A stretch of DNA of 64,000 nucleotides, from positions 62,001 through 126,000 of IMG/VR virus record IMGVR_UViG_3300034117_001582. The stretch is one strand, 5' to 3'. Positions 1 to 52,077 of this stretch are shown here, in pieces. Position numbers and translations under genes: made by a program. Below the pieces are notes generated by a model that had not been told where the DNA came from, made no database searches, and worked only from the letters and a program-made list of their open reading frames with translations. Position 1 is the stretch's first letter. The number at the start of each line of letters is the position of its first letter.

Positions 1-750
1 ATATGCGTGAATAAATGCAACATTTGGTTGTTCTTCCATAGGTATCGACCATCCTGTCTTGTCCCACCAATTACCAATGTCTTTTGAGTCATATTGTGCC
101 CAATCTTCCCAAAACCCACTTGTATACCCAAAAAATTGAAATAAAAATGAAAGTGTCGCATCGCACCACTCAATTGGTCTTGAATCTAACTTATAAATTT
201 CCTCCCAAGGCACCTCATCCAATCTATTATAAATTTCTATAAATTTTTCTCTATTAAATATTGTTCCACCACATGCACCATAACTTTGTAAAGAACCCGA
301 AAGACTCCAACTATGTCTTGAGTCGTCAATAACTCCAAACTTATTTTTTAAATATTCATAAAGTTCTGTGGTATATAACGGACCATTCGCACCTGAGATA
401 TCAAACTTTGGTGGCCTTGTAATTTCAAATCTACACCACACATCATCTTCATAATGAATAATCCAATCAACATCTTTAAGTGTTGTTGTACAGGCATCAT
501 AAATTCTTTTTAACCAATCAAGTTGTCCGTTCTCTTTAACAAACACTCTTCCTGAATGTGGATTGTTAATCCCTTGTTGTTCTATCCAAGTATATTCACA
601 ATTAAATTTTTTTGCAACGGGTTCCAATAATGTTGACCCATCCTCATATAACGCAACGGGAATATTGGGATACACCTTTCTTAATTGTTCTAAGGCCTTA
701 TAACACGCAACTAATTTGTGTCCTGATTGATAAAATGCTCCTATTTTCAT
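1..750 (-). CDS. GT-A fold glycosyltransferase (runs off the window; not in the ORF track)
   Basis: My translation from the ATG at 748-750 (ATGA overlap with the upstream stop) is open to position 1: MKIGAFYQSGHK...VALYEDGS...DWIIHYEDDVW...YGACGGTIFNREKF...WCDATLSFLF. The EDD metal-binding motif and GG-x-x-F motif are typical of GT-A enzymes. Confidence 0.7.
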   Translation of the reverse strand, partial: MKIGAFYQSGHKLVACYKALEQLRKVYPNIPVALYEDGSTLLEPVAKKFNCEYTWIEQQGINNPHSGRVFVKENGQLDWLKRIYDACTTTLKDVDWIIHYEDDVWCRFEITRPPKFDISGANGPLYTTELYEYLKNKFGVIDDSRHSWSLSGSLQSYGACGGTIFNREKFIEIYNRLDEVPWEEIYKLDSRPIEWCDATLSFLFQFFGYTSGFWEDWAQYDSKDIGNWWDKTGWSIPMEEQPNVAFIHAY

Positions 751-1943
751 AATATTGTATCTATTCTTTGTCCCCATTCACCATTTTTATGATTAACCCA
801 ATAAACCCATTTATGTGGTTTTTCATATGATTCTATGGTTATGTGTAATTTATCTTGATGTAACATCAAGTCTTGTCTATGAAGTACAACCCCGTCTTTA
901 TCTTCTATTCCAATATAAATAAAATTAAAATCTTCAGGTTTTGGTATTTCTAAATTATATTCAAACTTTTCTTTTTGTTTTAAATGCCAATCAGATAAAT
1001 CATTAATAGGCGGGTCGATTCCTCTTATCGTGTCCTCGTGTAACCGTCTGTCTTTAAAGTTAATGCCGGCATATATTTCATAATCTCTATGTGTTCTAAC
1101 ATTACCTAAACCATATATCTCAAGGTCAATATTATTATCCTCTTCTTGCAACATATGTCTTAACCTTCTTTTGGATTCGTTATCCATTTCCCACCATTGT
1201 TTTTCAACAACACCTTTGTTTTTGTTTTCATCATTAAAGTCTGTCCAATGTTTTGTCCTACCTTCTCTTGTATATTCATGCCAAACAACAGTCTTATGTG
1301 GGTGGAATAAATCATATCCTAATGTAAATGAACGAATGGATAAACTAATTTCATCACCAGCAAAATAGATATTCGGATCGTACTTATATTCTTCACAATG
1401 CTTTCCTATTGTAAAAAAGAAGTGTCCACTAACAAATCTTGCAGGTATTGGTTTATCTAAGGTTTCCCAACCTGAAATAGAGTGAGGCCTAAAAAGTATT
1501 GTTCCTCCTGGTGTAAAATTTGACGCAACCATCTTATATGGTTCAGTGTTTAACAACTCATTTGTACTTGGTCTGTACATACCAGCATATGACGTGATGA
1601 TTGGTTTTTCAGAACCGGTTTGTTTCATCATTTCAATTAATTCAACATCCCAATCTTGTAAAAATCTGTGGTGTGAGTCTAATTGTAATGTGTATTCTTC
1701 ATTATCCCATAATTTTTGAATCTCACTACGAGCCCAACAAAGACCTTTACTTAATGACCAATGATAATCTAAAATTTTAAATCTTGGGTCATTTACAAAT
1801 TCTTCCATTGATTCAGTTTCGTCATGTTGCCAACAAATTCCAAATGTTAAATTTTCGGGGTGTTTTGCATTATTAATGCAATCTCTAATAGTCGGTAAAA
1901 GTTCGGGGTCTCGATAAGACGCTATTTGAACAAATATTTTCAT
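747..1943 (-). CDS. GT60-like (Pfam 'GlcNAc', Skp1/polypeptide GlcNAc-transferase family) glycosyltransferase
   Basis: Motifs IFVQIASYRDPEL, GLCWARS, LQLDSHHRF (DSH), FVSGHFFF, YDP.IYF.GDE and VWHEY. Confidence 0.85.
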   Translation of the reverse strand: MKIFVQIASYRDPELLPTIRDCINNAKHPENLTFGICWQHDETESMEEFVNDPRFKILDYHWSLSKGLCWARSEIQKLWDNEEYTLQLDSHHRFLQDWDVELIEMMKQTGSEKPIITSYAGMYRPSTNELLNTEPYKMVASNFTPGGTILFRPHSISGWETLDKPIPARFVSGHFFFTIGKHCEEYKYDPNIYFAGDEISLSIRSFTLGYDLFHPHKTVVWHEYTREGRTKHWTDFNDENKNKGVVEKQWWEMDNESKRRLRHMLQEEDNNIDLEIYGLGNVRTHRDYEIYAGINFKDRRLHEDTIRGIDPPINDLSDWHLKQKEKFEYNLEIPKPEDFNFIYIGIEDKDGVVLHRQDLMLHQDKLHITIESYEKPHKWVYWVNHKNGEWGQRIDTIL

Positions 1944-1993
1944 AAAGGGTTTTCTTTATGATAAGTTTTAACGATAAAAAAACAATAGTAAAT

Positions 1994-2506
1994 CTAACAA
2001 GTTGGGCAGATACTCAATAGTGTTACGGTACCATAAGTCACACTACTTGTTGTTGGTGTAGTAGACGAACATATACTAAAATTTCCATTACTTAATCCGT
2101 ATGGTGATATGTTTATTTCACCACAACAAGGAGTAAAAGTAACTTCGATTATTCCGTCACCAATATTACCGACCCTATAATAAAGACAAGTAGGTGGTTT
2201 AAATGTTGGAGTAGGAGTCGGTGTCGGTGTAGGGGTTGGTGTCGGTGTCGGTGTAGGGGTTGGTGTCGGTGTAGGTGTTGGTGTCGGTGTGCAGGGTTGT
2301 GGGTCAACAAAAACACAACCAGTTCCATCTATAATTTTTATTTGTAGTAATTCTAAATTTGGAAAATAATTATCACTATCTATCTGTACGGTTGGTGGTA
2401 TCGATGTAACCCCTGAAACATAAAAACAAGAAGTTAAAGTCCAATCACATAAGAATATGTCGTATGGGCTTGTACCGCTAGTTACTCCTGTAATATCTAT
2501 TATCAT
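1994..2506 (-). CDS. small Cys-rich virion-associated protein with a (TP)14 linker
   Basis: N-terminal GTSPY...IKIIDGTGC module (SprB-like), then a TP repeat, then a C-terminal Cys module. The ATG at 2504-2506 overlaps the upstream TGA. Confidence 0.6.
   Translation of the reverse strand: MIIDITGVTSGTSPYDIFLCDWTLTSCFYVSGVTSIPPTVQIDSDNYFPNLELLQIKIIDGTGCVFVDPQPCTPTPTPTPTPTPTPTPTPTPTPTPTPTPTFKPPTCLYYRVGNIGDGIIEVTFTPCCGEINISPYGLSNGNFSICSSTTPTTSSVTYGTVTLLSICPTC
2204..2290 (-). repeat. coding hexamer tandem repeat encoding (Thr-Pro)14-Thr
   Basis: 29 codons alternate ACN/CCN, including an exact 24-nt duplication (2217-2240 = 2241-2264). Confidence 0.95.
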
Positions 2507-2790
2507 AACCAAACTAATGTATCTCCACTTTCCGTGGTTATTATTAACGAGTTTTCCGTTATTATGAAGAACGTATCAAATGGACAATAAACCATTTTAA
2601 AAGTGAAACAACCCGTACTATCAACTATTTTGATTAGTAATGTCTGAGCAGTAGAAAAGAAAGTATTAAGAGTAAATGTTCCGCCGGTAGGTCCCAATAA
2701 AAAACAATTATTCATGTATTCGTCACACACATAAAATTGATAGGGAGGTGTTCCTCCTGTCTGTCCCGATATTATTAGTTGATGGGCCAT
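2503..2790 (-). CDS. small protein paralogous to the N-terminus of the TP-repeat protein
   Basis: GGTPPYQFYVCD..NNCF...LLIKIVDSTGC aligns with SGTSPYDIFLCD..TSCF...LQIKIIDGTGC. It ends in an ITE-x5-TESG motif and starts at a TAATG overlap at 2790. Confidence 0.65.
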   Translation of the reverse strand: MAHQLIISGQTGGTPPYQFYVCDEYMNNCFLLGPTGGTFTLNTFFSTAQTLLIKIVDSTGCFTFKMVYCPFDTFFIITENSLIITTESGDTLVWL

Positions 2791-5099
2791 TATGGTGTTC
2801 CACAAACAACATCATAAACAATACTTAACCCTAATGAAAAATCCGCGTCAGATAAAGGGTCACTATCACCACTACATTTTGACGTAATAGTTAAAGTATT
2901 GTCTAATAAGTTTATTTCGTAACTACCTATTTCAGTTATTCCCGAAAGAATACCATCAATTGTTGACTGCCAAACAGTATCTTGTGGTACATCATTTAAT
3001 GTTGTTGCAGTATAAAACGTTTCAGTAAAGGCAGAAGTAAACGCAGAACCACTAATTGTTAAATTACAAGTTAATACCGCAGAGTTAAAAACACAATCAG
3101 TATAACCTGAGGTAATATCAATAAACCCTTCATTTAACATTTCACTTAAACCTCTTTGGTTACCTGAAGTGGTTATAAATGTGTTTTTACAAAGTGTATA
3201 TAATTGGTACGATACAACATTTGTACCTATACATGTTATTGTTGCATATTGTGTATTTGTACATCCTGATGAATCTGTAGTGATAACAGAATACGTGTCG
3301 GCAGATAAATTAGTTGCCGTAGCCCCCGTTTGTCCATCTGACCAAAGATAAGTAAATGTTGGTTCACCATCATAAATTACAACGGTAGCAGTGCCATCAT
3401 TACTTCCCGTACAGTTTGTTGTTGAAATAGCAGTTTGTAATGACCCACCGGTGCTAATGGTAAACCCTGTACTAACCGCACATCCATCATAATCTGTTAC
3501 GGTTATAGTATATGAACCTGCAGGTAAATTATTATAAGTTATCGCACTTAAAGGAGTATCAATAATAGTATTACCATTACTTAAAACAAAATCTAAAGGT
3601 GATGTAAATCCGGTAGACACATTAATAATAGCAATACCATTTGATTGACTACAGGTTGACCCCGTTGTTGTCGCACTTACAGAGAATTTACTATTAGATG
3701 TTACGTTTAAAGTTGTTGAATAAACACAATCACTACCACTACCTGATATTACCAATAAGTAATTATCATTAGGTAAGTTTGTAAAATTATAATTTTGGTT
3801 TTGTGAAACGTTTCCATATACGGTACCACTAGATTGCCCTGAAAGACTATAAACATAAAACCCTCCAACACCGGCAATAGTCACATCAACCGCACCATTA
3901 TTTAAACTACAATTTGAGTTTGTTATAGTGGTCCCAACAACACTAAACCCATTAACACTAGTAACATAACCATTTAACGTGGTTTGACAGAAATTTGCAT
4001 CCCTAACCAAAACGGTATAGTTTCCAGTGGATAAATTACTAATTGTAAAGGTGTCAGATAAAGTATAACCAACCTCACCTGTAGAAGCCGAATAATAAAA
4101 TGGTACGGTACCCCCTGAAACGGTAAATGTAAGTGAACCATCAGAAGAAAAACACGTAGGATTTACTGCCGTTAAGTTTGCTAAACTAATTGGATCAGCA
4201 ACACCAATAACATCTGATTTAGTTGTTGAACATCCTAAACTATCTGTAACTGTACAAGAATAGGTTCCTTGAGTTAATCCTGTTATGATTTGACCCGTTC
4301 CACCATTACTCCAAAGATATGTATAAGGTCCCGTACCTGTTAATCCCGTTACCGCCAATTTACCGGTTGTTATTACACAATTAGAGGTATTAACCTTCCA
4401 AAAACCAAAATCAACGGCAGTACTTGCACTTATAACCGCATTTTCTGTATTTGCGCCTGTCGAGCCATAATCATATACCGTGGCATAATATATACCAACA
4501 CCAAGCCCATTAAAATTATATGGTAACGTTGAGGTTGTTTGAACATCATATATGACGTTATCTTTATAAAGTAATATATTATACGGCGAACCTGTAGTTG
4601 TCGCGGTGACTTGTAAAAAACCATTATCTAAACCACAAGTAGTACCGCTAGCATTTATAATATTAGCCTCAAAACAAGACGTAATACCGACATTTATATA
4701 TAGTTCGTCGTTTTGAAGACCCAAGGTATCGTTAAGTCTAAACACATATGTACCACCGGTTAATCCGGTAAAAGTCATAGTAGTTGAGCTTGTTTGTGCG
4801 GTTAAGGTACCAGGAATTATACTATCAATAGTATAAGGTGGAACACCACCAAAAGGGGTTATCGCAACATTACCTGTAATAGAGTCACATACTCCAGCCA
4901 CAGAAAACGAATAACTTAAACTACCTTGTATACAGTTTTGCGAACAAGTCTGACCGGTAGCGATATAAACACCATATGATGTTCCACTATAAGATTCATC
5001 CAAACAAATACTAACACCTAAAGATGCTCCCGCCTGTAGTAAACCACAACAGTCAACATAACTATATACACCATTAGTTAATCCCGATACACAAGCCAT
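2790..5099 (-). CDS. SprB-repeat protein, putative fibre/adhesin
   Basis: About 7 repeats of C-x3-[ND]G...G..PY.Y.W...[NG]L..G.Y..TVTD..GC; no signal peptide is visible. Confidence 0.8.
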   Translation of the reverse strand: MACVSGLTNGVYSYVDCCGLLQAGASLGVSICLDESYSGTSYGVYIATGQTCSQNCIQGSLSYSFSVAGVCDSITGNVAITPFGGVPPYTIDSIIPGTLTAQTSSTTMTFTGLTGGTYVFRLNDTLGLQNDELYINVGITSCFEANIINASGTTCGLDNGFLQVTATTTGSPYNILLYKDNVIYDVQTTSTLPYNFNGLGVGIYYATVYDYGSTGANTENAVISASTAVDFGFWKVNTSNCVITTGKLAVTGLTGTGPYTYLWSNGGTGQIITGLTQGTYSCTVTDSLGCSTTKSDVIGVADPISLANLTAVNPTCFSSDGSLTFTVSGGTVPFYYSASTGEVGYTLSDTFTISNLSTGNYTVLVRDANFCQTTLNGYVTSVNGFSVVGTTITNSNCSLNNGAVDVTIAGVGGFYVYSLSGQSSGTVYGNVSQNQNYNFTNLPNDNYLLVISGSGSDCVYSTTLNVTSNSKFSVSATTTGSTCSQSNGIAIINVSTGFTSPLDFVLSNGNTIIDTPLSAITYNNLPAGSYTITVTDYDGCAVSTGFTISTGGSLQTAISTTNCTGSNDGTATVVIYDGEPTFTYLWSDGQTGATATNLSADTYSVITTDSSGCTNTQYATITCIGTNVVSYQLYTLCKNTFITTSGNQRGLSEMLNEGFIDITSGYTDCVFNSAVLTCNLTISGSAFTSAFTETFYTATTLNDVPQDTVWQSTIDGILSGITEIGSYEINLLDNTLTITSKCSGDSDPLSDADFSLGLSIVYDVVCGTP

Positions 5100-8035
5100 T
5101 AGTTACAATTAATTTCAATGTTTATTCCAATATTTAACGACAAAGTACTATTTGTAAAGTCATCATAACAAGTTGAGTTACTAACAACTAATGTATTACC
5201 AGCAAAATAATAATTAAGACCGTGTTGATATAATGTTTCCAACTTTAGGTCTATCGCATCTAAAACTTGTGTCTGTGTTGGCACATCACCTAACCCATAC
5301 CCTGTGTAGAATTGTTCTTGAACCAAAACATTATTATCTAATCTACAGTCAATATACCAATCTGAAACAATACTATTTAAATCACATTGACTTTGTGAAT
5401 AACCACTATAACTCAATAAATCGCCTAATAAAAGTTGTAACATTTGTGAAGGTTCTCCTTGTAAATTACATTTTAAAGTTTGGTCGATGCAATCATAAGC
5501 AAATGGTTGTCCATTATATTTACAAGGGATACAAAGCACAGGAATAAATTGACATCCTCTTTGTCTTCTCCATACAAATTTTTGTCTGTGGAAAATTGTA
5601 TTTTCCATTTTTTGACCTGTCAGCCACAAAGTAGTACCAGGAACAACTTGTTCCAATAATCTTTGCCAATAATCACCAATACCTAAGGTATAGTCTATCA
5701 TTTTTTGATATGTGTACTTATTTGAAGGTATACCTACAGTTTGCTCTGATTCAAGGTATCTCCAAAATATCGATTGTAAGGTTGGATAACCACCCGTTTT
5801 ACCATCAAATATTGTTTGTCTATTTCTTACATTAATAAAATTATTATAGAAATCTTGCGCAAATTCAAAGAATGTCTTCTCATTTGGTTTTGGATTAATA
5901 TATGTCCAATCAACATTACCAGGGTAAGGATATGGAGCAGTCATACCAGAATTAGGTATTGGGTAATTATACTTAACCGACATATCCCATATGTCGTAAG
6001 TAATCCCCTGACCCATATTTGTGTATAACTCAATATTTTTAGAGTTAATAACTAATTTATCATCATTAACTTTATAATTAACACCATTTGTATTTGCACC
6101 ATCTCTTCTAATTCCAGTATCAGTAACCGCCCAAGATTTTTGATTATCAGAGACCTTAGTTAAAGTATATCCAACCCCCATATTAGGGAATTGTCTAAAC
6201 TTATCCATATATTCTTGTCCAAAAGTAAAAGGGTTTAAAGTGGTAACTAAGAATGGGTTTGATGGGTTAAAAGACGAGTTTGACGGGTCAGAAACTTCAG
6301 GAGACCTATGTTGTGGGCTCTTTTCAAACCAACCAGCACCTTTTTGGAAAAAGTCAGTTTCAGTTGCTTGCGGACTACTTGGATATCCGTCACTATCAAT
6401 TCCATAATCAACTGAAGTATTATTAACGGGCCTAATGAAACCACTTGTGGTATAACCAGTATACGTTACCCCTTGAATACTAAAAGTGTTGTTAGGGTCA
6501 AATGTTGGTTGTTCAACGTATTGAGTTCCTCCTGAAATTCTAGCGTATTGTTGGTCAAACTTATTAACATTAATTTTAGTATCGGCAATATAGATAACCT
6601 CATTAAACTCTAAAAGAGCCTCAGGAGCACCAACAAATCTCATAATATATTCTAAAGATTTTCTTGTTCCTTTACTTTTGAACATATAAGCGGCATTCAA
6701 GATAAGGTTCCTATAGTATTGATAATTTAACTCTGTCGGCGTTTGACTTTGAGCTTGTCCAGTAAATATTTGTTTTGGTTTTGTATTAAATACGGATTCT
6801 AAAAACCCTTCGTTGGTTATTGGTGATATATCAGTATTTATCCCTAATGTTGATGCTAAGTTTGTTAATAATTGTGATGGTATATCGTTACCAACTTGAT
6901 AATTAACTGAATTCATGTAAGCCAATGAGTCAATGAACTTTCTAACCTCATCAAAACTTCTACCATAAATTTGTAATACCTTTTCTATTTTTTGGTCAGA
7001 TGTGTCAAACTCTTTAATCGACCCTGTGATTAAAAACCTACTAATTAGGTTTGTTTTATACTCATCTAATTTTTCAGCAATAAATTGTAATTCATTTAAA
7101 TACTCACTAAATTTATTACTACTAATATCAATATTCCAAACTCGGTTTAAAGGCCAAGTTAAATTTTTAACGTACATAGTATATTTACCATCCGCATCGT
7201 AATCAGGATATTTGAAAGTTGATGTGTATTTTGGAAATGAAGTCCTGCTAATTAAAAAGTCCTCAACCTCATCAAAGTTTTCATCAAATATTTGTTGGGT
7301 TATTGTGGTGTTTGGTTTTATTATTAAGGTACTTGTAGTTGCACTTGCCCCACTAAACGGGTCACCCATTACAGTAACAGTAACCGTTCCACCAGACATA
7401 TTTAATGTTGGCGTAAAATCCGTAAATTTATATTCTGTTTGTAAATCTTCAAAGTATAACGCATAACTTTCAAAGTTAGGGGTTAACGCCCTAATCTGAC
7501 TTATTGGGTAAGGCTTAACCTCAATGTTTCTTTTAGCGTTTATTGAAAAATCAACATCAAACGGATTTCTAAATAATGAAGTATCCATGTCGAATGTTGT
7601 CTCATCATCTTTAGAATCATAAACAATATTTTCAGCAGTATTACCATAAAATAATCCTGATTGTTGTCTACTAAAAACTTCAATTGCCGCTGGAAAATTA
7701 TTAATGATTTTAATTGCCGATGTGGATATTCTTTTTGAAAGTGAACCATATAAAGAAAAACTCGTGATTTCCGATATGTCAAAGTTTGGATATACTTTAA
7801 AATTCTTTTCTATTATTCTTTTTGCCTGTTGTATGTCATCTATTTTAAGATTTTCCAAAGTATAAGCATCTGAAAATATGCCGGTATCAAACTTTCTATT
7901 TGCCTTTTCATATATCGCAGTAGTGAATTGGAAATTACCCTGCGTAAGTCCCCCACCGTCGGTTATTTGTAAACCGACCAAGTTGTCAGAAAAAGTCTTG
8001 ACACCACCAGGAGGAAAAAATATTTTATTAGCCAT
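5099..8035 (-). CDS. baseplate wedge protein (P2 gpI / T4 gp7-like)
   Basis: IPSQLLTNLASTLG and YYRNLILNAAYMFKSKGTRKSLE match the KGT signature of gpI-like proteins; the gene lies in the baseplate block. Confidence 0.6.
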   Translation of the reverse strand: MANKIFFPPGGVKTFSDNLVGLQITDGGGLTQGNFQFTTAIYEKANRKFDTGIFSDAYTLENLKIDDIQQAKRIIEKNFKVYPNFDISEITSFSLYGSLSKRISTSAIKIINNFPAAIEVFSRQQSGLFYGNTAENIVYDSKDDETTFDMDTSLFRNPFDVDFSINAKRNIEVKPYPISQIRALTPNFESYALYFEDLQTEYKFTDFTPTLNMSGGTVTVTVMGDPFSGASATTSTLIIKPNTTITQQIFDENFDEVEDFLISRTSFPKYTSTFKYPDYDADGKYTMYVKNLTWPLNRVWNIDISSNKFSEYLNELQFIAEKLDEYKTNLISRFLITGSIKEFDTSDQKIEKVLQIYGRSFDEVRKFIDSLAYMNSVNYQVGNDIPSQLLTNLASTLGINTDISPITNEGFLESVFNTKPKQIFTGQAQSQTPTELNYQYYRNLILNAAYMFKSKGTRKSLEYIMRFVGAPEALLEFNEVIYIADTKINVNKFDQQYARISGGTQYVEQPTFDPNNTFSIQGVTYTGYTTSGFIRPVNNTSVDYGIDSDGYPSSPQATETDFFQKGAGWFEKSPQHRSPEVSDPSNSSFNPSNPFLVTTLNPFTFGQEYMDKFRQFPNMGVGYTLTKVSDNQKSWAVTDTGIRRDGANTNGVNYKVNDDKLVINSKNIELYTNMGQGITYDIWDMSVKYNYPIPNSGMTAPYPYPGNVDWTYINPKPNEKTFFEFAQDFYNNFINVRNRQTIFDGKTGGYPTLQSIFWRYLESEQTVGIPSNKYTYQKMIDYTLGIGDYWQRLLEQVVPGTTLWLTGQKMENTIFHRQKFVWRRQRGCQFIPVLCIPCKYNGQPFAYDCIDQTLKCNLQGEPSQMLQLLLGDLLSYSGYSQSQCDLNSIVSDWYIDCRLDNNVLVQEQFYTGYGLGDVPTQTQVLDAIDLKLETLYQHGLNYYFAGNTLVVSNSTCYDDFTNSTLSLNIGINIEINCN

Positions 8036-19476: not shown

Positions 19477-19941
19477 TTAAATGTTAATTATTATAAATTC
19501 TCGACTACCAAACGCCTTATTTTCGTCGGTATAATCTATTTTTAATTTTGCAGTATACTCGGCGGTGTTAGCACCAGGTATTCTATATATACTAGCTTGA
19601 CCTAAAAGTTCATAATCAAGTTGACCAACAACATCCCCACTTTCAACGTAAGGTTCAACAGTAATACTATTGATTGTTAGGTTTGGTATGTATTTTTCAA
19701 CCTGTTCTTCAATTTCAGTCTTAATGCTTTCAAACGTTTCACCGTCTAAGGGTTCAAAAATAAATTCGTATATTCTTGTACCAAAATCAGGTAAATAATA
19801 CCTACTACCCCTTCTGGTTAATATAAGATGCAATAAACTAGACCTAATCTCCTGATCGGCAGTTTGGGTTAGTTTAACATAATTCCCTTCAACACTTTGT
19901 AAAAAAGGGAAATTTATTCCGTATGTAATACCATTAGACAT
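19477..19941 (-). CDS. baseplate wedge / sheath initiator (T4 gp25 / GPW-like)
   Basis: GINFPF...IRSSLLHLILTRRGSRYYLPDFGTRIYEFIFEP. Confidence 0.9.
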   Translation of the reverse strand: MSNGITYGINFPFLQSVEGNYVKLTQTADQEIRSSLLHLILTRRGSRYYLPDFGTRIYEFIFEPLDGETFESIKTEIEEQVEKYIPNLTINSITVEPYVESGDVVGQLDYELLGQASIYRIPGANTAEYTAKLKIDYTDENKAFGSREFIIINI

Positions 19942-19989
19942 ATTAAATAAATATAATGTGATGAATTTTCTAATAAATAGATATAAAAT

Positions 19990-20015
19990 AAAAAATCCTT
20001 ACGAAAGTAAGGATT
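19990..20015 (-). terminator. rho-independent terminator closing the replication block
   Basis: Minus strand AATCCTTAC-TTTC-GTAAGGATT is a perfect 9-bp stem followed by a T run. Confidence 0.75.
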
Positions 20016-20229
20016 CTTTAAGGTCTTTATTTCCTTTAATATGTGGCGGCCAATAACAACAATGTAAACATTTATTACCACAACAACTTCCTCTACCTTT
20101 ATGGTATTCTTCAGTCATAACCATTCTACCATCATTATTATAATAAAAGTCAGTAGGAAGGAGTTTAGGTCTTATAAACTCCTTCACGTACAACTCTTGT
20201 ATCCAATCTTTAGATGAGTTTACTGTCAT
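19999..20229 (-). CDS. DUF5522-like Cys/His-rich small protein
   Basis: FYYNNDGRMVMTEEYHKGRGSCCGNKCLHCCY matches the H-x2-RG-x-CCG-x2-C-x-HC pattern. Confidence 0.7.
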   Translation of the reverse strand: MTVNSSKDWIQELYVKEFIRPKLLPTDFYYNNDGRMVMTEEYHKGRGSCCGNKCLHCCYWPPHIKGNKDLKESLLS

Positions 20230-20248
20230 TTAATTATTTTTTATTATA

Positions 20249-22108
20249 TTAAACAATTTCACAGGCTCCACCAGCACAAGCGGCTTCACCTCTAAGGTCT
20301 GTATTATCTTGTAACTCAACCACTTTTGTAAGATCAACATCTGATAATGTTTTAACCAATCTTTCAAATTCTTCTTTTGTACAATCTTCAAAAGGAGCTT
20401 GGGTATAAGTTCCTCCGTTATATGGTAATACCGATAGTCCGTTATAGAAATCTCTATTATTCCACATCCATTCACCTACCAAGTCCCACTCATCTTCTTT
20501 AATTGAAACTGTTGCAGATACGTTGTGAGAGTTTTGTCCGTTTCTATGTCCAGGTTTAATCCATTCTTGAGATACTTTTTTAACTCTTTCCAACATTTGG
20601 AATACAGACTCGTGTCTTATAATTGCTCCTTCAGGTGCTTTTTGTGGTATACCAATAACTGCGGTATCGTGAGGACGGAAAAACTCATCTTCAATCAACT
20701 CAGGGTGATTAGTCGCCAAGTAAGAATAGATTGATTCATTCTTACCTACACGGATTCTTCTTAGGTAGTAATCATTATGCCAAGCGTGAATTCCTGATGA
20801 TGTACCCAAAACCAACGATGATGTTCCTGATGGTTTAACGGTTGTTGTTCTTGCAGATTTATTAATTCCAATAAGTGATGCAACTCTTTCGTTTTCTTCT
20901 TTAACCGCCTTAGCCGCTTTTTTCATATCATACCCTAAAACAACACCTGAACCAATACCTGTCATTCCAACACCAATAAGAGCATCTTTTTCAGTTGTTC
21001 GTTTCCAAATGTCTCTTAGATAATGGAAATCAGTGTATCCAGCCTGTAATGTACCAATGAATGATGCTGCTTTAACTCTTGCGTCGAAATCTTCTTGTGA
21101 TTCAATATCTGAAGCATTAACCTCACACAAGTTACAGAATTGAAATGGTCTAAGTGCAATTTCACAACAAGGATTGGTTCCCCAATCTTTGTCGTTTGAC
21201 AAATAGATACCCGGTTCCCCTGCTCCTGATAACTCAATTCTTTTCCAAAGACCCATAAAGAATTCTTTAGTGATTTTGTGTCGAAGAAGAACCGCCGAGT
21301 TATTAGCCCTACCTCTTTGTGCGTTTTGTTCCCACCAATTTCCTGACTTACAAGAAATCATTTCCTCGTCATCTGCAGAAAATAACGAGATAAGAGCCGC
21401 TCTTCTGATACCACCCGCTAATACCGCATCTGCAATATGACATACGATATCGTGAGTTTCGATTGGTGTTAATTTTTCACCATCTTTTTTGTTGTTCAAT
21501 ACTTTTGTAATATTGTGTATACAATCTTTTAATGGTTGAGGACCTGGAGCCTTTCCTCCTGATGTTACTAACATCGCACCTTTGTGTCTAATATCTGAAA
21601 AGTCAAATATAGGGGTTGATGATTTATAACCTAAATACGATTCCATTAACACTTTAATCGCGTCCGCCCATCCTTCAATAGAATCACCAATTAGGTAACG
21701 TCTTGTCCTTTCAGGGTTTGGTTTTTTAATATCTGGTAATTTTTCAACGTGATGTTTTTGAACTGAATACCCAACACCGGTACCACCTAAAAGTAAAAAC
21801 ATAGTTTCAGAAAAAGAGTCAACATGGTCTATCGGCATATACGCACAATTATAAACTCTATTTGGTGAAATTTCAATTGGTTTACCTCCAAATTGTAAAG
21901 ACCTCATTGATGGTAATACTTTCTTGTCGTATACCATTTTATATACCTCTTCAATCTCATTTTTAATGTTAGGGTACTTACGTTGGTGCATCTCTTTGTT
22001 TCGAGTTACCAATTCTTCCCAAGTCTCTCTCCGGTTCTTTTCGGGTTGAAACTTAGCGTATTTCATAAAGACAGTAATGTCACTTAATATTTTTTGCGAA
22101 ATATTCAT
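20249..22108 (-). CDS. nrdJ: class II (adenosylcobalamin-dependent, monomeric RTPR-type) ribonucleotide reductase
   Basis: LPSMRSL, NCAY, GTNPCCEI (thiyl Cys), FCNLCE, TTVKPSGT and C-terminal CAGGAC; no nrdB is adjacent. Confidence 0.9.
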   Translation of the reverse strand: MNISQKILSDITVFMKYAKFQPEKNRRETWEELVTRNKEMHQRKYPNIKNEIEEVYKMVYDKKVLPSMRSLQFGGKPIEISPNRVYNCAYMPIDHVDSFSETMFLLLGGTGVGYSVQKHHVEKLPDIKKPNPERTRRYLIGDSIEGWADAIKVLMESYLGYKSSTPIFDFSDIRHKGAMLVTSGGKAPGPQPLKDCIHNITKVLNNKKDGEKLTPIETHDIVCHIADAVLAGGIRRAALISLFSADDEEMISCKSGNWWEQNAQRGRANNSAVLLRHKITKEFFMGLWKRIELSGAGEPGIYLSNDKDWGTNPCCEIALRPFQFCNLCEVNASDIESQEDFDARVKAASFIGTLQAGYTDFHYLRDIWKRTTEKDALIGVGMTGIGSGVVLGYDMKKAAKAVKEENERVASLIGINKSARTTTVKPSGTSSLVLGTSSGIHAWHNDYYLRRIRVGKNESIYSYLATNHPELIEDEFFRPHDTAVIGIPQKAPEGAIIRHESVFQMLERVKKVSQEWIKPGHRNGQNSHNVSATVSIKEDEWDLVGEWMWNNRDFYNGLSVLPYNGGTYTQAPFEDCTKEEFERLVKTLSDVDLTKVVELQDNTDLRGEAACAGGACEIV

Positions 22109-22137
22109 TTTATTTTATTTTATTTTATTAATTTATG

Positions 22138-23517
22138 TTAAGATTCTTGTTGCTTTTGCTTCTTTCTTTCAAGTAGCTCTTTGATTCGGTTTTTGTTTCT
22201 TTCTTCTTTTTGTTCCTCATGACCAAGAAACGTCACGCTTTGTTCTGTATCTATTTCTAACATTCCGTTATCAAATTTACAGTTTTCAAAAACAATTCCG
22301 TCTTTACCAATTCTAGATTTGGTAATAGCGATTGTTGCCAAATTCATTTCTTTCTGTTGTAGACTCTTAGCCACCGTAATAATTACGTGACCAACTTGTG
22401 CCTTTTTAATAGACCCACCCATTTGGTCTGTTGTTACTACCTCTGATGATATTGAGCTTCTATTCCCTTGTGTTGCAGTCCAACCAGCGATGTCTAACTC
22501 GTGACACATCGATTCAAACCCTCTCATAACTGAACCTTCACTTTTCCATTCGTCACCCAAGTTCTTGTCAGGTACAACACAATCAATATAATCTAAAATT
22601 ATCATATCAACTTTATTACCTTCCGCAATCATCTTTCTTACTTGATTTTTAATTTGATTCATAGTAATCGTATCGGAAGGTAGTTTTTTCATTATCAACT
22701 TATTTTTCATAGTTGATTGAATGTGTTTGATTTTTTCCACAACTTCTATTTTGTTTTCAGATAAATCATCGGGATGTACTCCTGTCCAAAGCGTAAAGTG
22801 TTTTCTTTGAATAATTTTTGGGTTGTCTTCAAAAAAGATTTGAAGAACATTATACCCTAAGTTAAATGCGTGGTTAGCAATTTTAGTTGTAAATGTTGAT
22901 TTACCTACACCGGTTGGTGCTAAAATTACACCAATTTCACCTTTAGCCAAACCACCTTTTAATAAGTTGTCAATACCAGGGATTCCAATTGGAATGGGGT
23001 GTCTGTAATCATCATCCATAACCTCATCAATGTTAAAAAAAACATCAGTTGTTCCTTTGTCGGTTTCGCCAACTTGAAGTGCTCCACGTACCATTTCTTC
23101 TAACGTATCGTAACTCTCGAAATCACCTTTATCGATGATTGATTGAGCTTTAGTCATTACTTTTTGGAGTTCTTGTTGTTTACAAAACTTTAGGGCTTTT
23201 TCTTGTACGTACGCTGAACCATCATCTGAAACCGTCCTTACTTGGTCAAGAGTGTCTAAAATACTCTTCTGAGCCATCGGAGAACTAATTTCTGACTTTG
23301 TCAGTTGTTCAAGTGTATCAAACGTAGGTGTGTGCTCATATTTTGAATAAAACTCCTTTATCATTTGACAAATGATTCGGAAATATTGGTTATCAAAATA
23401 GTGCGGGTCAATAACTTCAATGATGGAATTTGAGAAATCTTTATAAACAATAATGTTATTTATTAATTGATTTTGAAAGGTATTCCCTAGATACCCGAAG
23501 TTCTTTTTGTCTGACAT
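22138..23517 (-). CDS. dnaB: replicative DnaB/gp41-like helicase
   Basis: Walker A APTGVGKS, Walker B IILDYID, TATQGNR and KSRIG. Confidence 0.9.
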   Translation of the reverse strand: MSDKKNFGYLGNTFQNQLINNIIVYKDFSNSIIEVIDPHYFDNQYFRIICQMIKEFYSKYEHTPTFDTLEQLTKSEISSPMAQKSILDTLDQVRTVSDDGSAYVQEKALKFCKQQELQKVMTKAQSIIDKGDFESYDTLEEMVRGALQVGETDKGTTDVFFNIDEVMDDDYRHPIPIGIPGIDNLLKGGLAKGEIGVILAPTGVGKSTFTTKIANHAFNLGYNVLQIFFEDNPKIIQRKHFTLWTGVHPDDLSENKIEVVEKIKHIQSTMKNKLIMKKLPSDTITMNQIKNQVRKMIAEGNKVDMIILDYIDCVVPDKNLGDEWKSEGSVMRGFESMCHELDIAGWTATQGNRSSISSEVVTTDQMGGSIKKAQVGHVIITVAKSLQQKEMNLATIAITKSRIGKDGIVFENCKFDNGMLEIDTEQSVTFLGHEEQKEERNKNRIKELLERKKQKQQES

Positions 23518-23555
23518 AATTTAATGATTTGTTATTTGTTTTCTAATAAATACTA

Positions 23556-24008
23556 TTAGGCGAATGAATAATTTAGGTAATTATAAGATAAATTTTTATC
23601 TGATAAAATGTCAGTCAGGTCTCTTAGAATGTTTTTTATTGATGGTCGTACGTCCAGCGTATATCTTACCTTCGGCGGGTATACTTTAGCATCAATCACT
23701 CTATGACAAATTGTCTCATTTCCTAACTTTAAAATGATGTTAAATACCTCCGGTCCATCCGTATTTGATGTTTCTAAAATACTAGAATCCTCTTCAATTT
23801 GAAAACGATTTTCTAACATATAGACAACACATTTATTTCTTAATTTAGTTTGTAAATCTAGAGATAACCCATTAAGGTAATTTAGAAGTTCAATACTATT
23901 TTTTGCTTTAATATTGAACCCTTTAACATTAAAAAATCTCTGAACAACAAAGTTGTTGTTTAATGTAATTAAGAATTCAACCTTTGTTACGTCGTTTTGT
24001 TCTTTCAT
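23556..24008 (-). CDS. hypothetical protein in the replication block
   Basis: 150-aa ORF between the exonuclease and the helicase. Confidence 0.6.
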   Translation of the reverse strand: MKEQNDVTKVEFLITLNNNFVVQRFFNVKGFNIKAKNSIELLNYLNGLSLDLQTKLRNKCVVYMLENRFQIEEDSSILETSNTDGPEVFNIILKLGNETICHRVIDAKVYPPKVRYTLDVRPSIKNILRDLTDILSDKNLSYNYLNYSFA

Positions 24009-24020
24009 GTTTTTTTTGTT

Positions 24021-25028
24021 TTACTTTTTGTTTTTAAACTTTGTTTTTTCTTTTCTTGTTAACTTTAAAAATGGTTTTATAAAATAAATCCAATTTTCGT
24101 CATTCTTTGGTAGGTATTTAAACAAACCATCTTCCATCATCATTCTAATTAAATTCTTATGTCCTCTTCCGTCGGGATCCATCGACTCGGAATAATAAGA
24201 TTCAACTAATTCTTTTCCTTCTTCACTTATTAGTGGTTCCGATAAATCTACAAGTTTTTTATTTATCTCGTAATACTCATTACCAAAAATACCATCCTTT
24301 GTTCTACCACTTAATAGGTTTTTTAAGGCTGAATTATCTTTATCTTCTTTTAAAAGTAATTCCCCTTTTGTTAAAATATCGGCGATATTTACCTCTTTGT
24401 CAAGTAACTCAGGAAATAACTTAACTAATGTTTTTTCTCCCAAATAATAAATACCATTAATATTGTCTGACTTGTCGCCAGATAATATTTTCCAAGTTTT
24501 AACATTATAGTGAGGTATCTCAACATCATACATTTTAATCATATCCCCATTCTTATAATGTTTTTTAGTACTCGGGGAATAGATACTCACATCTTCAGAG
24601 ATAAGCTGTGTAAGGTCTCTATCACTTGAGAAAATAGTTTTGTGTTCGTCTTTAGATATTTTACAGTAGTACGCAATAATATCATCAGCCTCACAAGCAT
24701 CAATTTCAATATGTCTTATAAACATCTCTTCAAGATATTGTTTTACCCTTGTCTTTTGATATGAGAATGAATGTACTTGTTCTTCGGTATTTGCTTGTCT
24801 TCGGTTAAGTTTATAATTGGGATAAAATAATCTTCGTTGTGTTGAACTACTTTCACTGTCCCAACAAACCACAACTTTATTGTAGTTTCCTTCATCCAAA
24901 AATCTTCTGGTTGTGTTTAAGAAATGCCAAATCCCGCCAACGTGTTCTCCTTTGTTATAAAAATCTTTGACCCCACAAACACCAATCTTTAGTAGATTGT
25001 TGCCGTCAATAACAAGAGTTTTAATCAT
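24021..25028 (-). CDS. 5'-3' exonuclease / flap endonuclease (T4 RNase H, PolI N-domain family)
   Basis: LVIDGNNL, YKLNR, EADDIIA, SSDRDLTQL and GDKSDNI.GI..LGEKT. Confidence 0.92.
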   Translation of the reverse strand: MIKTLVIDGNNLLKIGVCGVKDFYNKGEHVGGIWHFLNTTRRFLDEGNYNKVVVCWDSESSSTQRRLFYPNYKLNRRQANTEEQVHSFSYQKTRVKQYLEEMFIRHIEIDACEADDIIAYYCKISKDEHKTIFSSDRDLTQLISEDVSIYSPSTKKHYKNGDMIKMYDVEIPHYNVKTWKILSGDKSDNINGIYYLGEKTLVKLFPELLDKEVNIADILTKGELLLKEDKDNSALKNLLSGRTKDGIFGNEYYEINKKLVDLSEPLISEEGKELVESYYSESMDPDGRGHKNLIRMMMEDGLFKYLPKNDENWIYFIKPFLKLTRKEKTKFKNKK

Positions 25029-25060
25029 TTAAATTTTTTAAGTTGTTTGAAAATACTTTT

Positions 25061-26044
25061 TTACTCGTCAGAGTCATCATCAGATTCGTCTAAAGAATAA
25101 TCTGAATACCCTAATTTTGTTTCCCAATAATCAGAATATTCTTTCTTATAGTTATCCAAAGATTCTTTTGTGTCTGTAATATAACCTTGTGGTACCGCAA
25201 TAATCTTACCATCTTTATATCCAAGACCATTAACATGATTCTTTAATATAGAAATTTTTGTTCTAATTGCAAACGATACTTTTCTACCATTCTTAGTAGC
25301 ATCAATGTGACTAATACCCGCCTTTTTCTGATTACCAAATAAGAACACTAATGATGATGCTAACCATATTGCCTCACCACCCTTAGCCTTTATTTCAGGT
25401 TGTCCAAACGGATTGTCAGGAAGTAACACCCAAGGTTGATTTAAAATCACAAGAGTGTTATAATAAGGGTATTCTTCTTTTTTAGATTTTGAAATCCTTG
25501 AATGAATTCCCATACCAATCTTATCTGCAAGTACCTTAGCGTTGTGCATACCACCACCTTTTCCATCAAAAGTCATCTGACAAGGGACACTACCAATACT
25601 ATCCCATAAAAACAATAGGCTATAAGGTATGTCTCCTTTTTCTTGAGAATCAAGTATTTCATTAATAAACTCGGTTGCTTGTTCGATAACGTCAAATGAA
25701 TCATTAAAGATAAACATACCATCATACTCACCAAGTTCGTTTTTCTCCGCTTGCAATCCTAATTCAATTGCGTGTTCCCAAGACCATTTTTTCTCAGTAA
25801 TAATAAGAACAGGTAAATGACCTTTCTTTTGCGCATCGGCCGCCGCCAATATCATTGCCGTTGTTTTTGAAGTGTTTGAATGCCCCAAGAACATATTAAC
25901 ACCACCCATTACAGGGCCAGGTAAACCACAAGAGTTCATAAAGGCCTCACCACAATTATAAAAACTTTCGGGTTTATATTTTGTTTTGGTTGAGAACTTA
26001 TTTTTTATTGCGTCTAAACTAAATTCTTTCTTTTTCAATGCCAT
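25061..26044 (-). CDS. RecA/UvsX-like recombinase
   Basis: P-loop GHSNTSKTT, Walker B FLWDSIG, ILNQ, GGEAI and KNHV; the gene is next to SSB. The ATG at 26042-26044 is the preferred start. Confidence 0.85.
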   Translation of the reverse strand: MALKKKEFSLDAIKNKFSTKTKYKPESFYNCGEAFMNSCGLPGPVMGGVNMFLGHSNTSKTTAMILAAADAQKKGHLPVLIITEKKWSWEHAIELGLQAEKNELGEYDGMFIFNDSFDVIEQATEFINEILDSQEKGDIPYSLLFLWDSIGSVPCQMTFDGKGGGMHNAKVLADKIGMGIHSRISKSKKEEYPYYNTLVILNQPWVLLPDNPFGQPEIKAKGGEAIWLASSLVFLFGNQKKAGISHIDATKNGRKVSFAIRTKISILKNHVNGLGYKDGKIIAVPQGYITDTKESLDNYKKEYSDYWETKLGYSDYSLDESDDDSDE

Positions 26045-26076
26045 AATAATCAATATTTGTTATAAAAAATATATAT

Positions 26077-26107
26077 AAAAAAACGGGAACTTTAAATGGT
26101 CCCCGCC
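26077..26107 (-). terminator. rho-independent terminator after SSB
   Basis: Minus strand GCGGGGAC-catttaaa-GTTCCCGT followed by a T run. Confidence 0.7.
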
Positions 26108-26129
26108 TAATTTTTTGTTGTTAATAAAC

Positions 26130-26987: not shown

Positions 26988-27022
26988 AAATTAATTTTAA
27001 ATTATTACTCTTTTATCTACAA

Positions 27023-27053
27023 CAAATATAGGTACAAATGTCAGAATGTCAAA
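27023..27053 (-). promoter_or_regulatory. Bacteroidota-type sigma70 promoter for SSB
   Basis: Minus strand TTTG (27053-27050), a 19-nt spacer, then TATATTTG (27030-27023) matches TTTG-N19-21-TAnnTTTG; the site also reads TTGACA. Confidence 0.6.
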
Positions 27054-27064
27054 TGAAATGGCAT

Positions 27065-27090
27065 AAAAAAAGGGGACTTACAATCCCCTT
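27065..27090 (-). terminator. rho-independent terminator
   Basis: Minus strand AAGGGGA-ttgtaag-TCCCCTT followed by a T run. Confidence 0.75.
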
Positions 27091-27107
27091 AAATTTTTAT
27101 TTTTATA

Positions 27108-52022: not shown

Positions 52023-52077
52023 ACCTATAAATACTTTGATTGATTTTTTCTTTTATTTTATTATTATTTATATAATA

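Follow-up and report, generated by a model that had tools for sequence, protein, structure and literature searches.

A candidate GT60 O-glycosylation cassette amid Thr-Pro linker proteins of a phage tail-fibre module

A freshwater jumbo phage encodes a GT60 glycosyltransferase, a member of a family related to the enzymes of mucin-type glycosylation, together with a second glycosyltransferase, and the two genes lie between genes for two tail-fibre-module proteins with long Thr-Pro linkers. The same pairing of GT60 with a neighbouring Thr-Pro protein recurs in many unrelated phages and bacteria, which suggests an undescribed prokaryotic protein-glycosylation system. The sequence analysed, here called the window, is a stretch of 64 000 nt (positions 62,001 to 126,000 of IMG/VR record IMGVR_UViG_3300034117_001582). 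An initial annotation made from the sequence alone had described a GT60-like gene and a coupled GT-A gene directly downstream of a Cys-rich (TP)14T protein, and had inferred that GT60 primes Thr in the TP linkers and that the GT-A enzyme extends the glycan, stiffening or shielding virion appendages. That description is confirmed by our analysis, apart from the position assigned to the pair within the fibre block. The interpretation is supported, in that every part of it open to computation came out as proposed, while the chemistry remains inference.

The GT60 locus and its neighbours

All the features of the locus lie on the minus strand, and their positions are collected in Table 1. The assignment of the first enzyme to GT60 is firm. 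It matches the Pfam family PF11397 ('GlcNAc') with 225.7 bits against a cut-off of 21, and phrog_24687 with E 1.5e-103. The DSH sequence is a DxH motif, which in place of DxD is the signature of GT27 and GT60 (PMC7185993). Searches of PDB sequences with the protein and with its profile found nothing meaningful, and structural comparison was therefore required. The best match of the model is Dictyostelium Gnt1 (E 1e-24, TM 0.68/0.64, 25% identity over residues 2–305), followed only by polypeptide GalNAc-transferases, and all 50 top PDB matches belong to the latter family. The model starts directly with strand β1.

Table 1. Features of the GT60 region, in window coordinates
Position (strand)	Feature	Observations
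1..750 (-)	p265, first 250 codons of a 265-aa GT-A-fold glycosyltransferase	Start overlaps the GT60 stop (ATGA); gene runs 47 nt beyond the window start; model pLDDT 90.5; E101 and D103 invariant, D102 nearly so (EDD)
747..1943 (-)	GT60 glycosyltransferase, 398 aa	PF11397 E 1.5e-66; catalytic GT-A domain at about aa 1–305, extra C-terminal β domain at about aa 325–397; no signal peptide or membrane segment; model pLDDT 94.4
1275..1283 (-)	W221-H222-E223 of GT60	H222 invariant; candidate C-terminal His metal ligand, a role inferred from GT27/GT-A literature (PMC7185993); geometry not checked
1671..1679 (-)	DSH (DxH) metal-binding motif of GT60, D89-S90-H91	Invariant in 55 and in 33 aligned homologues
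1908..1922 (-)	ASYRD motif of GT60, aa 8–12, at the end of strand β1	Y10-R11-D12 invariant; by position a nucleotide-binding element of the GT-A fold
1994..2506 (-)	p170, 170-aa Cys-rich protein (ATG start, 10 Cys); candidate acceptor	N-terminal ~65-aa SprB-like small domain, (TP)14T linker, C-terminal Cys-rich domain; N-domain homologous to the two 95-aa proteins of the block (E 1e-8 to 1e-9)
2204..2290 (-)	(TP)14T tract of p170	aa 75–103 of the 172-aa ORF listed from a TTG at 2512; mixed codons; length varies between near-identical strains, (TP)10 in strain L006
2503..2790 (-)	p95a, 95-aa Cys-containing small-domain protein	Paralogue of the p170 N-domain and of p95b
2790..5099 (-)	769-aa Cys-rich SprB-repeat protein of the fibre block	PF13573 E 2.9e-11; no TP tract in this phage but one in several relatives
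5099..8035 (-)	978-aa conserved protein of the same block	Synteny marker; function unknown

The second enzyme, p265, has no Pfam, PHROG or PDB sequence hit and cannot be assigned to a family. Its model nevertheless has a GT-A fold, with an acidic DxD-type motif after a β-strand. The best hits in a Foldseek search are GT6 ABO transferases (E 1e-8), and Z scores of 11–14 were obtained to many GT-A enzymes, including CHSY3, C1GalT1, B3GalT5, B3GNT2 and LgtC, so that the structural neighbours span GT6, GT31, GT8, GT7 and GT2. p265 is almost always linked to GT60, in 43 of 46 loci, and the other three have too little upstream flank to tell.

The (TP)14T tract of p170, encoded 50 nt upstream of GT60, is written with mixed Thr and Pro codons and is thus not a plain DNA microsatellite. 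On the other side of the pair, just outside the window, lies a 541-aa Cys-rich protein (p541) with three (TP)8–11 linkers. This is the better-conserved partner; in 45 syntenic loci GT60 is followed by this protein, with or without one intervening enzyme gene. The initial annotation had placed the pair at the end of the fibre block. In fact it lies inside the block that follows the baseplate-wedge genes, which continues on the source contig for another ~9 kb (proteins of 541, 95, 556, 529 [SprB], 735, 201 and 166 aa) before a primase-like gene is reached. The three further T/P-rich stretches that had been pointed out are real, at window ~30039, ~38481 and ~37704, in the 2431-aa and 2148-aa ORFs, but they lie far from the cassette.

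A megablast search of the region against cultured phages found nothing, and tblastn found only four cultured jumbo phages with GT60. A promoter and terminator scan of positions 1–5200 was at chance level and gives no evidence on operon structure. Metatranscriptome contigs from two lake runs match pieces of GT60 and its neighbours at 90–99% identity, but these are short pieces of relatives for which DNA carry-over cannot be excluded, and the very large depth over the TP-coding repeat comes from many organisms; we have not used them as evidence of expression. In IMG/VR there are at least 599 pattern matches, of which 591 encode a GT60 relative.

Thr-Pro genes beside GT60 in other phages and bacteria

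How general is the pairing of GT60 with TP-tract genes? Absence of a genomic association had been set out in advance as an outcome that would count against the proposal, and the association proves to be strongly positive. Of 186 GT60 representatives from phage and bacterial contigs, 62 have a gene with at least 30 aa of T/P tract within 500 bp, compared with 9 of 273 positions shifted by 6 kb (odds ratio 14.7, p 9e-19), an enrichment of 15-fold. When the sequences are grouped into clusters at 60% identity, 17 of 53 have such a gene within 1 kb, against 1 of 53 in a control window. The density of TP ORFs is 0.17 per kb at 0–500 bp, falling to 0.002–0.035 per kb at 3–10 kb. These distance-based counts replaced a neighbour-rank statistic with a longest-ORF filter, which under-counted TP genes in high-GC genomes. 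The TP-adjacent state requires at least 35 changes on the GT60 tree.

The association is not restricted to the lineage of this phage. Unrelated TP-tract genes are immediate neighbours of GT60 in the loci designated L034, L037, L048, L059, L061 and L063, and in about 20 further viral contigs, where the TP gene ends 40–110 bp upstream on the same strand. The same is found in genomes of Sphingomonas, Vicinamibacterales, Saprospiraceae, Opitutaceae, Actinomycetota and others, including bacterial operons with gaps of 3–20 bp. In Sphingomonas a 1200-aa protein is encoded directly upstream of GT60, and in Ralstonia sp. 25C a VgrG with a TP linker lies ~1 kb from GT60.

Several observations nevertheless stand against the proposal. 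About two thirds of the GT60 representatives have no TP-tract gene within 500 bp. More distant relatives of this phage have many TP linkers but no GT60 within reach, so TP linkers do not need GT60; three scans for GT60 elsewhere on the contigs of such relatives gave no match, but they were not exhaustive and leave the question undecided. In loci L083, L087 and L120 a GT29-like gene stands where GT60 should be. In the cultured phages XacN1 and RAS14, GT60 lies among replication genes, near DNA polymerase and RNase H and beside a carbamoyltransferase, with a TP/PS-tract giant protein only ~9 kb away; the giant proteins of these phages are ORF325 and WAX21643. The frequency of TP linkers in relatives that lack a detectable GT60, and the distance of the window's other T/P-rich stretches from the cassette, could be accommodated if GT60 glycosylated other proteins, either those of the host during takeover or non-TP regions of phage proteins, with the TP tracts being ordinary unmodified linkers. 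We regard this as very unlikely, because it does not explain why non-homologous TP-tract genes are the immediate neighbours of GT60 across phyla.

GT60 sits at the head of swappable cassettes. The position next to it holds p265 in about 30 of the 45 syntenic loci, and other enzymes in some of the rest. Other cassettes hold one to five further enzymes. The sets are p265, an HtrL-like protein, GT34, GT32 plus a sulfotransferase, GT4 plus GT25 plus UDP-galactopyranose mutase, or a methyltransferase. The presence of p265 and of these other genes is consistent with extension of a primed glycan, but neither the order of action nor the acceptor is known, and the gene content alone does not decide whether p265 is an extending enzyme.

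A proposed pathway and its relation to known systems

We propose that the pair is a phage-encoded protein O-glycosylation cassette acting on the Thr-Pro linkers of tail-fibre-module proteins. The genes sit in the late structural block and are probably expressed with it. In this view the soluble GT60 enzyme works in the host cytoplasm and uses a UDP-HexNAc donor, most likely UDP-GlcNAc, with a divalent metal bound by the DxH motif, to place an α-linked HexNAc on Thr residues of the (TP)n linkers of p170 and p541, encoded on either side. The translationally coupled p265 would then add at least one more sugar. The glycosylated linkers would be built into the baseplate or fibre apparatus, where the glycans would stiffen and extend them and protect them from proteases or from recognition. 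The family and fold of both enzymes, their coupling, the TP tracts and the lineage-independent adjacency of GT60 to TP-tract genes are established by the analysis, whereas the donor, the acceptor residue, the order of action, the location of the acceptors in the virion and the benefit to the phage are inferred. There is no biochemical or proteomic evidence and no cultured member of this lineage; neither use of a UDP-GlcNAc donor with retaining transfer to polypeptide Thr, Ser or Hyp nor modification of the tracts was assayed, no virion proteins were examined for glycans, and that p170 and p541 are virion parts rests on gene position only. We put the probability of this reading at about 0.55.

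The closest precedents are the protist GT60 polypeptide α-GlcNAc-transferases, Dictyostelium Gnt2 and Trypanosoma cruzi TcOGNT-2. The characterized GT60 enzymes that we found in the literature are polypeptide α-GlcNAc transferases; that of T. cruzi uses UDP-GlcNAc, Mn2+ and a Thr/Pro peptide, and its product is extended with Gal (PMC3769586, PMC7185993). These enzymes share the CAZy and Pfam family and the DxH motif of the phage protein. Their acceptors are Thr in Thr/Pro-rich repeats (KP2T8KP2), and the priming GlcNAc is then extended by other transferases, in T. cruzi with Galf or Galp; some phage cassettes carry a UDP-Galp mutase. The protist enzymes, however, are Golgi membrane proteins acting on secreted or GPI-anchored mucins, while the phage enzyme is soluble, has an extra C-terminal β domain and is encoded next to its presumed substrates in a fibre module.

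Gnt1, the best structural match, is like the phage enzyme a soluble cytoplasmic protein, but it modifies one hydroxyproline of one protein, Skp1, and depends on a prolyl hydroxylase. This raises the possibility that the same cassette acts on the same tracts through hydroxyproline, with a prolyl 4-hydroxylase first oxidizing Pro and GT60 then making Hyp-O-GlcNAc. Pro (44%) is indeed even more abundant than Thr (32%) in the neighbouring tracts, which are long repeats. Yet a Pfam search found no 2OG-Fe(II) or prolyl-hydroxylase domain in the window ORFs of 100 aa or more that were scanned or in the GT60 neighbours examined, although about 230 kb of the genome lies outside the window. Moreover, Gnt1 is the only GT60 member to appear among the Swiss-Prot structural hits, so the ranking does not discriminate between acceptor types, and Thr is kept in the tracts while Ser is rare (8%). 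We consider this route very unlikely.

The animal polypeptide GalNAc-transferases (GT27) of mucin-type O-glycosylation share the GT-A fold, the DxH motif, peptide Ser/Thr acceptors in Pro-rich tandem repeats, and initiation followed by extension. They are a different family (12–16% identity), with UDP-GalNAc as donor, a ricin-type lectin domain and a Golgi location. The candidate acceptors here have the Thr/Pro-rich tandem repeats of a mucin-type system, but this is a phage of bacteria, and the enzyme has no signal peptide or membrane segment for a secretory pathway such as the Golgi; the cassette would therefore work like the system but is not the eukaryotic pathway.

Phage glycosyltransferases are best known for DNA glucosylation and serotype conversion (PMC12619734). 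The two enzymes could thus act on a non-protein acceptor, either host LPS or capsule for exclusion or receptor masking, or phage DNA, with the TP-tract neighbours only a by-product of the location in a fibre module. The position of GT60 in XacN1 and RAS14 might be read in this way, and many of the partner families (GT25, HtrL/YibB, GT8 and GT4) are classically LPS enzymes. Against this, the adjacency peak is sharp and recurs in non-homologous contexts, and both the characterized GT60 enzymes found in the literature here and the GT27 structural relatives take peptide acceptors. No hydroxymethyl-pyrimidine pathway gene was seen in the 64-kb window, nor any DNA-hypermodification gene among its ORFs of 100 aa or more or the neighbours scanned, and the enzymes are soluble, unlike the Gtr-type serotype converters. 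This explanation too is unlikely.

Virion glycosylation has a precedent in mycobacteriophages (Freeman et al. 2023, as cited in PMC12619734), where phage-encoded glycosyltransferases decorate the phage's own structural proteins. In the present phage the glycosyltransferase genes likewise lie beside structural genes. The mycobacteriophage glycans sit at the C-termini of capsid and tail-tube subunits, whereas the candidates here are fibre-module linkers, and no GT60 or TP-repeat link was found in the papers searched. Two bacterial systems are also comparable. In the serine-rich-repeat adhesins of Gram-positive bacteria, GtfA/GtfB carry out cytoplasmic O-GlcNAc priming of a long repetitive Ser/Thr-rich region, followed by a strain-variable set of extending transferases encoded beside the substrate; there the primer is a GT-B (GT4) pair, the substrates are Ser-rich and export goes through an accessory Sec system. 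The (PT)n interdomain linkers of Cellulomonas and actinobacterial cellulases carry O-glycans that protect them from proteolysis, but these are O-mannosylated by membrane PMT-type enzymes during secretion, and no GT60 is involved.

Implications for GT60 and for phage fibres

GT60 is recorded as occurring in prokaryotes and protists (PMC7185993), but the characterized members that we found are protist enzymes, and no paper in the library searched links GT60 or PF11397 to phages. A broader reading, which we offer only tentatively and regard as somewhat less likely than not, is that the pairs of GT60 and TP-tract genes are a widespread prokaryotic and phage counterpart of mucin-type O-glycosylation, so far undescribed. 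A cytoplasmic GT60 would prime Thr in Thr-Pro linkers of proteins that leave the cell already folded, such as phage fibres, T6SS VgrG spikes and lysin-like proteins, and the swappable set of downstream enzymes would then write on them a lineage-specific glycan, sometimes sulfated, methylated or Galf-containing. This would give GT60 its first prokaryotic function, and would make glycan-coated fibres a common trait of environmental phages.

If the cassette works as proposed, glycosylated tail-fibre linkers would be common in environmental phages; the only demonstrated case of virion glycosylation cited here is that of the mycobacteriophages. It would also provide a simple gene-pair rule for finding substrates of cytoplasmic O-glycosylation in bacteria, and a prokaryotic relative of the enzyme that starts mucin-type glycosylation. 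And it would explain part of the hypervariability of phage fibre modules as variation of glycan rather than of protein.

The GT60 enzyme, its coupled partner and the Thr-Pro proteins

All the genes considered here lie on the minus strand of the window. The larger enzyme gene encodes 398 aa and matches Pfam PF11397 ('Glycosyltransferase (GlcNAc)', the GT60 family) with E = 1.5e-66 and 225.7 bits, against a gathering score of 21. It also matches phrog_24687 over its whole length. The ASYRD and DSH motifs reported in the initial annotation are present, at aa 8–12 and 89–91, respectively. In alignments of 55 and 33 homologues, Y10-R11-D12, D89-S90-H91 and H222 are invariant. DxH in place of DxD is the published signature shared by GT27 and GT60 (PMC7185993). 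An AlphaFold model (pLDDT 94.4) starts directly with strand beta-1, so there is no signal peptide or membrane anchor, and it has an extra beta domain at about aa 325–397. The best Swiss-Prot match of the model is Dictyostelium Gnt1 (E = 1e-24, TM 0.68/0.64), and every other listed match, both in AFDB Swiss-Prot and in the PDB, is a polypeptide GalNAc-transferase. Membership of GT60 is therefore firm, and the nearest structural relatives are the enzymes that start mucin-type O-glycosylation. A rival reading has hydroxyproline rather than threonine as the acceptor, and Gnt1 is the top structural match. However, no prolyl hydroxylase was seen among the window ORFs of 100 aa or more and the neighbouring genes scanned, and Gnt1 is the only GT60 member among the Swiss-Prot hits.

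The ATG of the second gene overlaps the TGA of the GT60 gene. The second gene runs off the start of the window, but on the source contig it encodes 265 aa, and we refer to the protein as p265. It has no Pfam, PHROG or PDB sequence match, yet its model (pLDDT 90.5) has a GT-A fold. The best Foldseek hits are the GT6 ABO transferases (E = 1e-8), and VIA-align gives Z = 11–14 to many GT-A enzymes, namely CHSY3, C1GalT1, B3GalT5, B3GNT2, Fringe and LgtC. E101 and D103 of a YEDDVW motif are invariant in 36 homologues. Thus the coupled GT-A enzyme of the initial annotation is confirmed as a fold, but no CAZy family could be assigned. The p265 family is almost tied to GT60; of 46 viral loci found with its profile 43 contain GT60, and the three that do not have less than 2.6 kb of upstream flank.

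On the other side of the GT60 gene lies a Cys-rich protein, p170 (170 aa from the ATG, 10 Cys). It comprises an N-terminal domain of ∼65 aa that is paralogous to the two 95-aa proteins of the same gene block, the (TP)14T tract, and a Cys-rich C-terminal domain. The tract is written with mixed Thr and Pro codons, and is (TP)10 in a 95%-identical strain. In some relatives the gene just upstream of GT60 encodes a collagen-triple-helix-repeat protein instead (PF01391, E = 1e-34 in locus L039). In two lake metatranscriptome runs the TP-coding repeat attracts a very high summed contig depth (about 1270). Contigs from many organisms carry similar ACN-CCN repeats, so that TP-coding tracts are abundant in lake communities, but the metatranscriptome matches are too weak to show expression. 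The window misses the main partner by about 90 nt. The gene that follows p265 on the source contig encodes a 541-aa protein with 29 Cys (p541), in which three linkers, (PT)11, (TP)8 and (TP)11, separate the domains. This is the best-conserved TP partner of GT60 (45 syntenic loci), and is invisible from the window alone.

The source is a 246–292 kb phage contig from freshwater metagenomes, carrying myovirus tail genes for sheath, tube, baseplate hub, and gp25- and gp6-like wedge proteins. The enzymes and the (TP)14T protein of the initial annotation are real, but its placement of them at the end of the baseplate/fibre block is not correct; the cassette lies inside a long block of unannotated, partly SprB-repeat proteins that follows the wedge genes and continues for another ∼9 kb beyond the window. 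Elsewhere in the window, replication and nucleotide genes (RNR, DnaB-like helicase, exonuclease, UvsX-like, SSB) are wedged between two structural blocks. Two giant ORFs without any Pfam hit lie between the hub, tube and sheath genes and the replication genes, and hold the other T/P-rich stretches listed in the initial annotation. A short plus-strand island encodes an Fe/Mn superoxide dismutase (Sod_Fe_N and Sod_Fe_C, E = 1e-41) and an SNF2-family helicase.

Coordinates of the features discussed. L001 is the source contig; L029, L039, L083 and L200 are loci of relatives or homologues.
Feature	Sequence	Position	Strand
GT60 glycosyltransferase gene	window	747-1943	-
p265 gene	window	starts at 750, runs off the window start	-
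p170 gene	window	1994-2506	-
(TP)14T tract	window	2204-2290	-
TP-coding repeat with high metatranscriptome depth	window	2211-2380	
p541 gene	L001	12037-13662 (about 90-1720 nt beyond the window start)	
Wedge genes	window	17.6-19.9 kb	
Replication and nucleotide genes	window	19477-27773	-
Giant ORF, 2431 aa	window	28039-35334	-
Giant ORF, 2148 aa	window	35641-42087	-
Hub, tube and sheath genes	window	44-50 kb	
SNF2-family helicase	window	51910-53841	+
Fe/Mn superoxide dismutase	window	53854-54588	+
Collagen-repeat gene upstream of GT60	L029	9171-9950	
Collagen-repeat gene upstream of GT60	L039	8899-9798	
GT29 gene, 195 aa	L083	18381-18965	-
VgrG with (PT)n tract, Ralstonia sp. 25C	L200	12270-15131	-

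Association of GT60 with Thr-Pro tract genes

In 45 loci syntenic with the window GT60 is followed by the three-linker protein p541, either directly or after one enzyme gene. That middle slot varies. p265 is present in about 30 of the 45 loci and absent in about 15. It is replaced by an HtrL/YibB-like protein in L053, L121 and L136, and by a 567-aa GT34 protein in L082 and L131. In three relatives (L083, L087 and L120) there is no GT60, and a GT29-like (sialyltransferase-family) gene on the opposite strand stands directly before the p541 homologue. Within this lineage the adjacency could be mere synteny. More distant relatives have many TP linkers with no GT60 in reach, and TP linkers therefore do not require GT60.

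How general is the pairing? Lack of genomic association between GT60 and TP-repeat genes had been named in the initial annotation as one of the results that would refute its proposal, and outside the lineage the association is found. GT60 genes of 37–70% identity in non-syntenic phage contigs have unrelated TP-tract genes as immediate neighbours, for example in L034, L037, L048, L059, L061 and L063. A profile scan of IMG/VR returned at least 599 pattern matches, of which 591 were confirmed as GT60 relatives. Among 69 new loci about 20 have a TP-tract gene ending 40–110 bp upstream of GT60 on the same strand. The collection scans are capped at 80 loci and ±10 kb. A scan of species-representative bacterial genomes confirmed 434 GT60 relatives across many phyla, although some of the 'bacterial' MAG contigs may be phage or prophage. 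Again many have a TP-tract gene abutting GT60, with gaps from 0 to a few tens of bp, including Sphingomonas, Vicinamibacterales, Saprospiraceae, Opitutaceae and Actinomycetota. The bacterial neighbours are diverse. They include 1200–1450-aa proteins with an Rv2525c-like glycoside-hydrolase-like domain, and fn3, PPC and BNR proteins. In the chromosome of Ralstonia sp. 25C a VgrG (a T6SS spike with Phage_GPD and Gp5_trimer_C domains) with a long (PT)n tract lies ∼1.1 kb from a GT60 gene, suggesting glycosylated T6SS spikes.

Of 186 GT60 representatives (90% identity clusters), 62 have an ORF with at least 30 aa of T/P/S tract within 500 bp (viral 40 of 108, bacterial 22 of 76), whereas pseudo-genes shifted by 6 kb give 9 of 273 (odds ratio 14.7, Fisher P = 9e-19). 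At the level of 60%-identity clusters, 17 of 53 have such an ORF within 1 kb, against 1 of 53 in a control window twice as wide. The cluster-weighted density is 0.17 per kb at 0–500 bp, and 0.002–0.035 per kb at 3–10 kb. On a tree of 184 GT60 sequences the TP-adjacent state needs at least 35 changes, so it is not the legacy of one clade, and the phage and bacterial labels interleave, with at least 14 changes. The tracts are 44% Pro, 32% Thr and 8% Ser. An alternative is that the acceptor is not a protein, but rather LPS, capsule or DNA. Partner families such as GT25, HtrL and GT8 are classically LPS enzymes. In the cultured phages XacN1 and RAS14, GT60 lies among replication genes next to a 765-aa carbamoyltransferase, with a giant protein (over 3000 aa) containing TP/PS tracts starting ∼9 kb away. 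Yet a non-protein acceptor does not explain the sharp adjacency peak. Other protein acceptors are a further possibility.

Enzyme cassettes and the proposed mechanism

GT60 stands at the head of modular enzyme sets. The further members are p265 (72 loci), an HtrL-like protein (25 loci), GT34, GT8 plus a 337-aa protein, GT32-like plus sulfotransferase with or without a GT29-like gene, GT4-like plus GT25 with or without p265 and UDP-galactopyranose mutase (Glf), an FkbM-type methyltransferase, or a second GT60 (locus L055). The set containing the sulfotransferase is a conserved operon in which GT60 is followed by a GT32-like DXD transferase and then the sulfotransferase, with the GT29-like gene at the end where present. 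It is found in Verrucomicrobiota (L144, L147, L148, L152, L153 and L176, with Verrucomicrobium and Prosthecobacter genomes represented) and in phage L048, and implies sulfated glycans built on the GT60 product. Glf (PF03275, E = 2e-75 in L329) lies next to or near p265 homologues in L319–L321, L325, L328–L330 and L333, in the order GT60-p265-Glf in L319–L321. This hints that the p265 family could be a galactofuranosyltransferase, although the locus in the window has no Glf nearby. This modular organization is the pattern expected for a primer enzyme followed by variable glycan builders, and it parallels the extension of GlcNAc-alpha-Thr with Galf or Galp in the mucins of T. cruzi (PMC3769586).

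The interpretation in the initial annotation, that GT60 primes threonine in the TP linkers and the GT-A enzyme extends the glycan, is supported by these results as far as sequence and structure comparison can reach. What the analysis demonstrates is the families and folds assigned to the enzymes, their translational coupling, the TP tracts, and an adjacency that is independent of lineage. A UDP-GlcNAc donor, a DxH-bound metal and an alpha-O-link to Thr are inferred from what is known of GT60 (PMC7185993, PMC3769586), all of our evidence being computational. From the context we further infer that the enzymes act in the host cytoplasm on p170 and p541 before assembly, that p265 extends the glycan, and that the glycans have a stiffening or shielding role on fibre linkers. 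The virion location of p170 and p541 is itself inferred from gene order.

Both mucin-type priming by GT60 and phage virion glycosylation are known. However, literature searches for GT60 or PF11397 together with phages, and for O-glycosylation of phage virions or fibres, found no description of the pairing of a GT60 gene with a TP-tract gene. A recent paper on large aquatic phages mentions glycosyltransferases only in general terms, and only four of 50,697 cultured phage records carry GT60. We regard the cassette as a variant of these two known processes, and it comes with a testable and probably general gene-pair rule.
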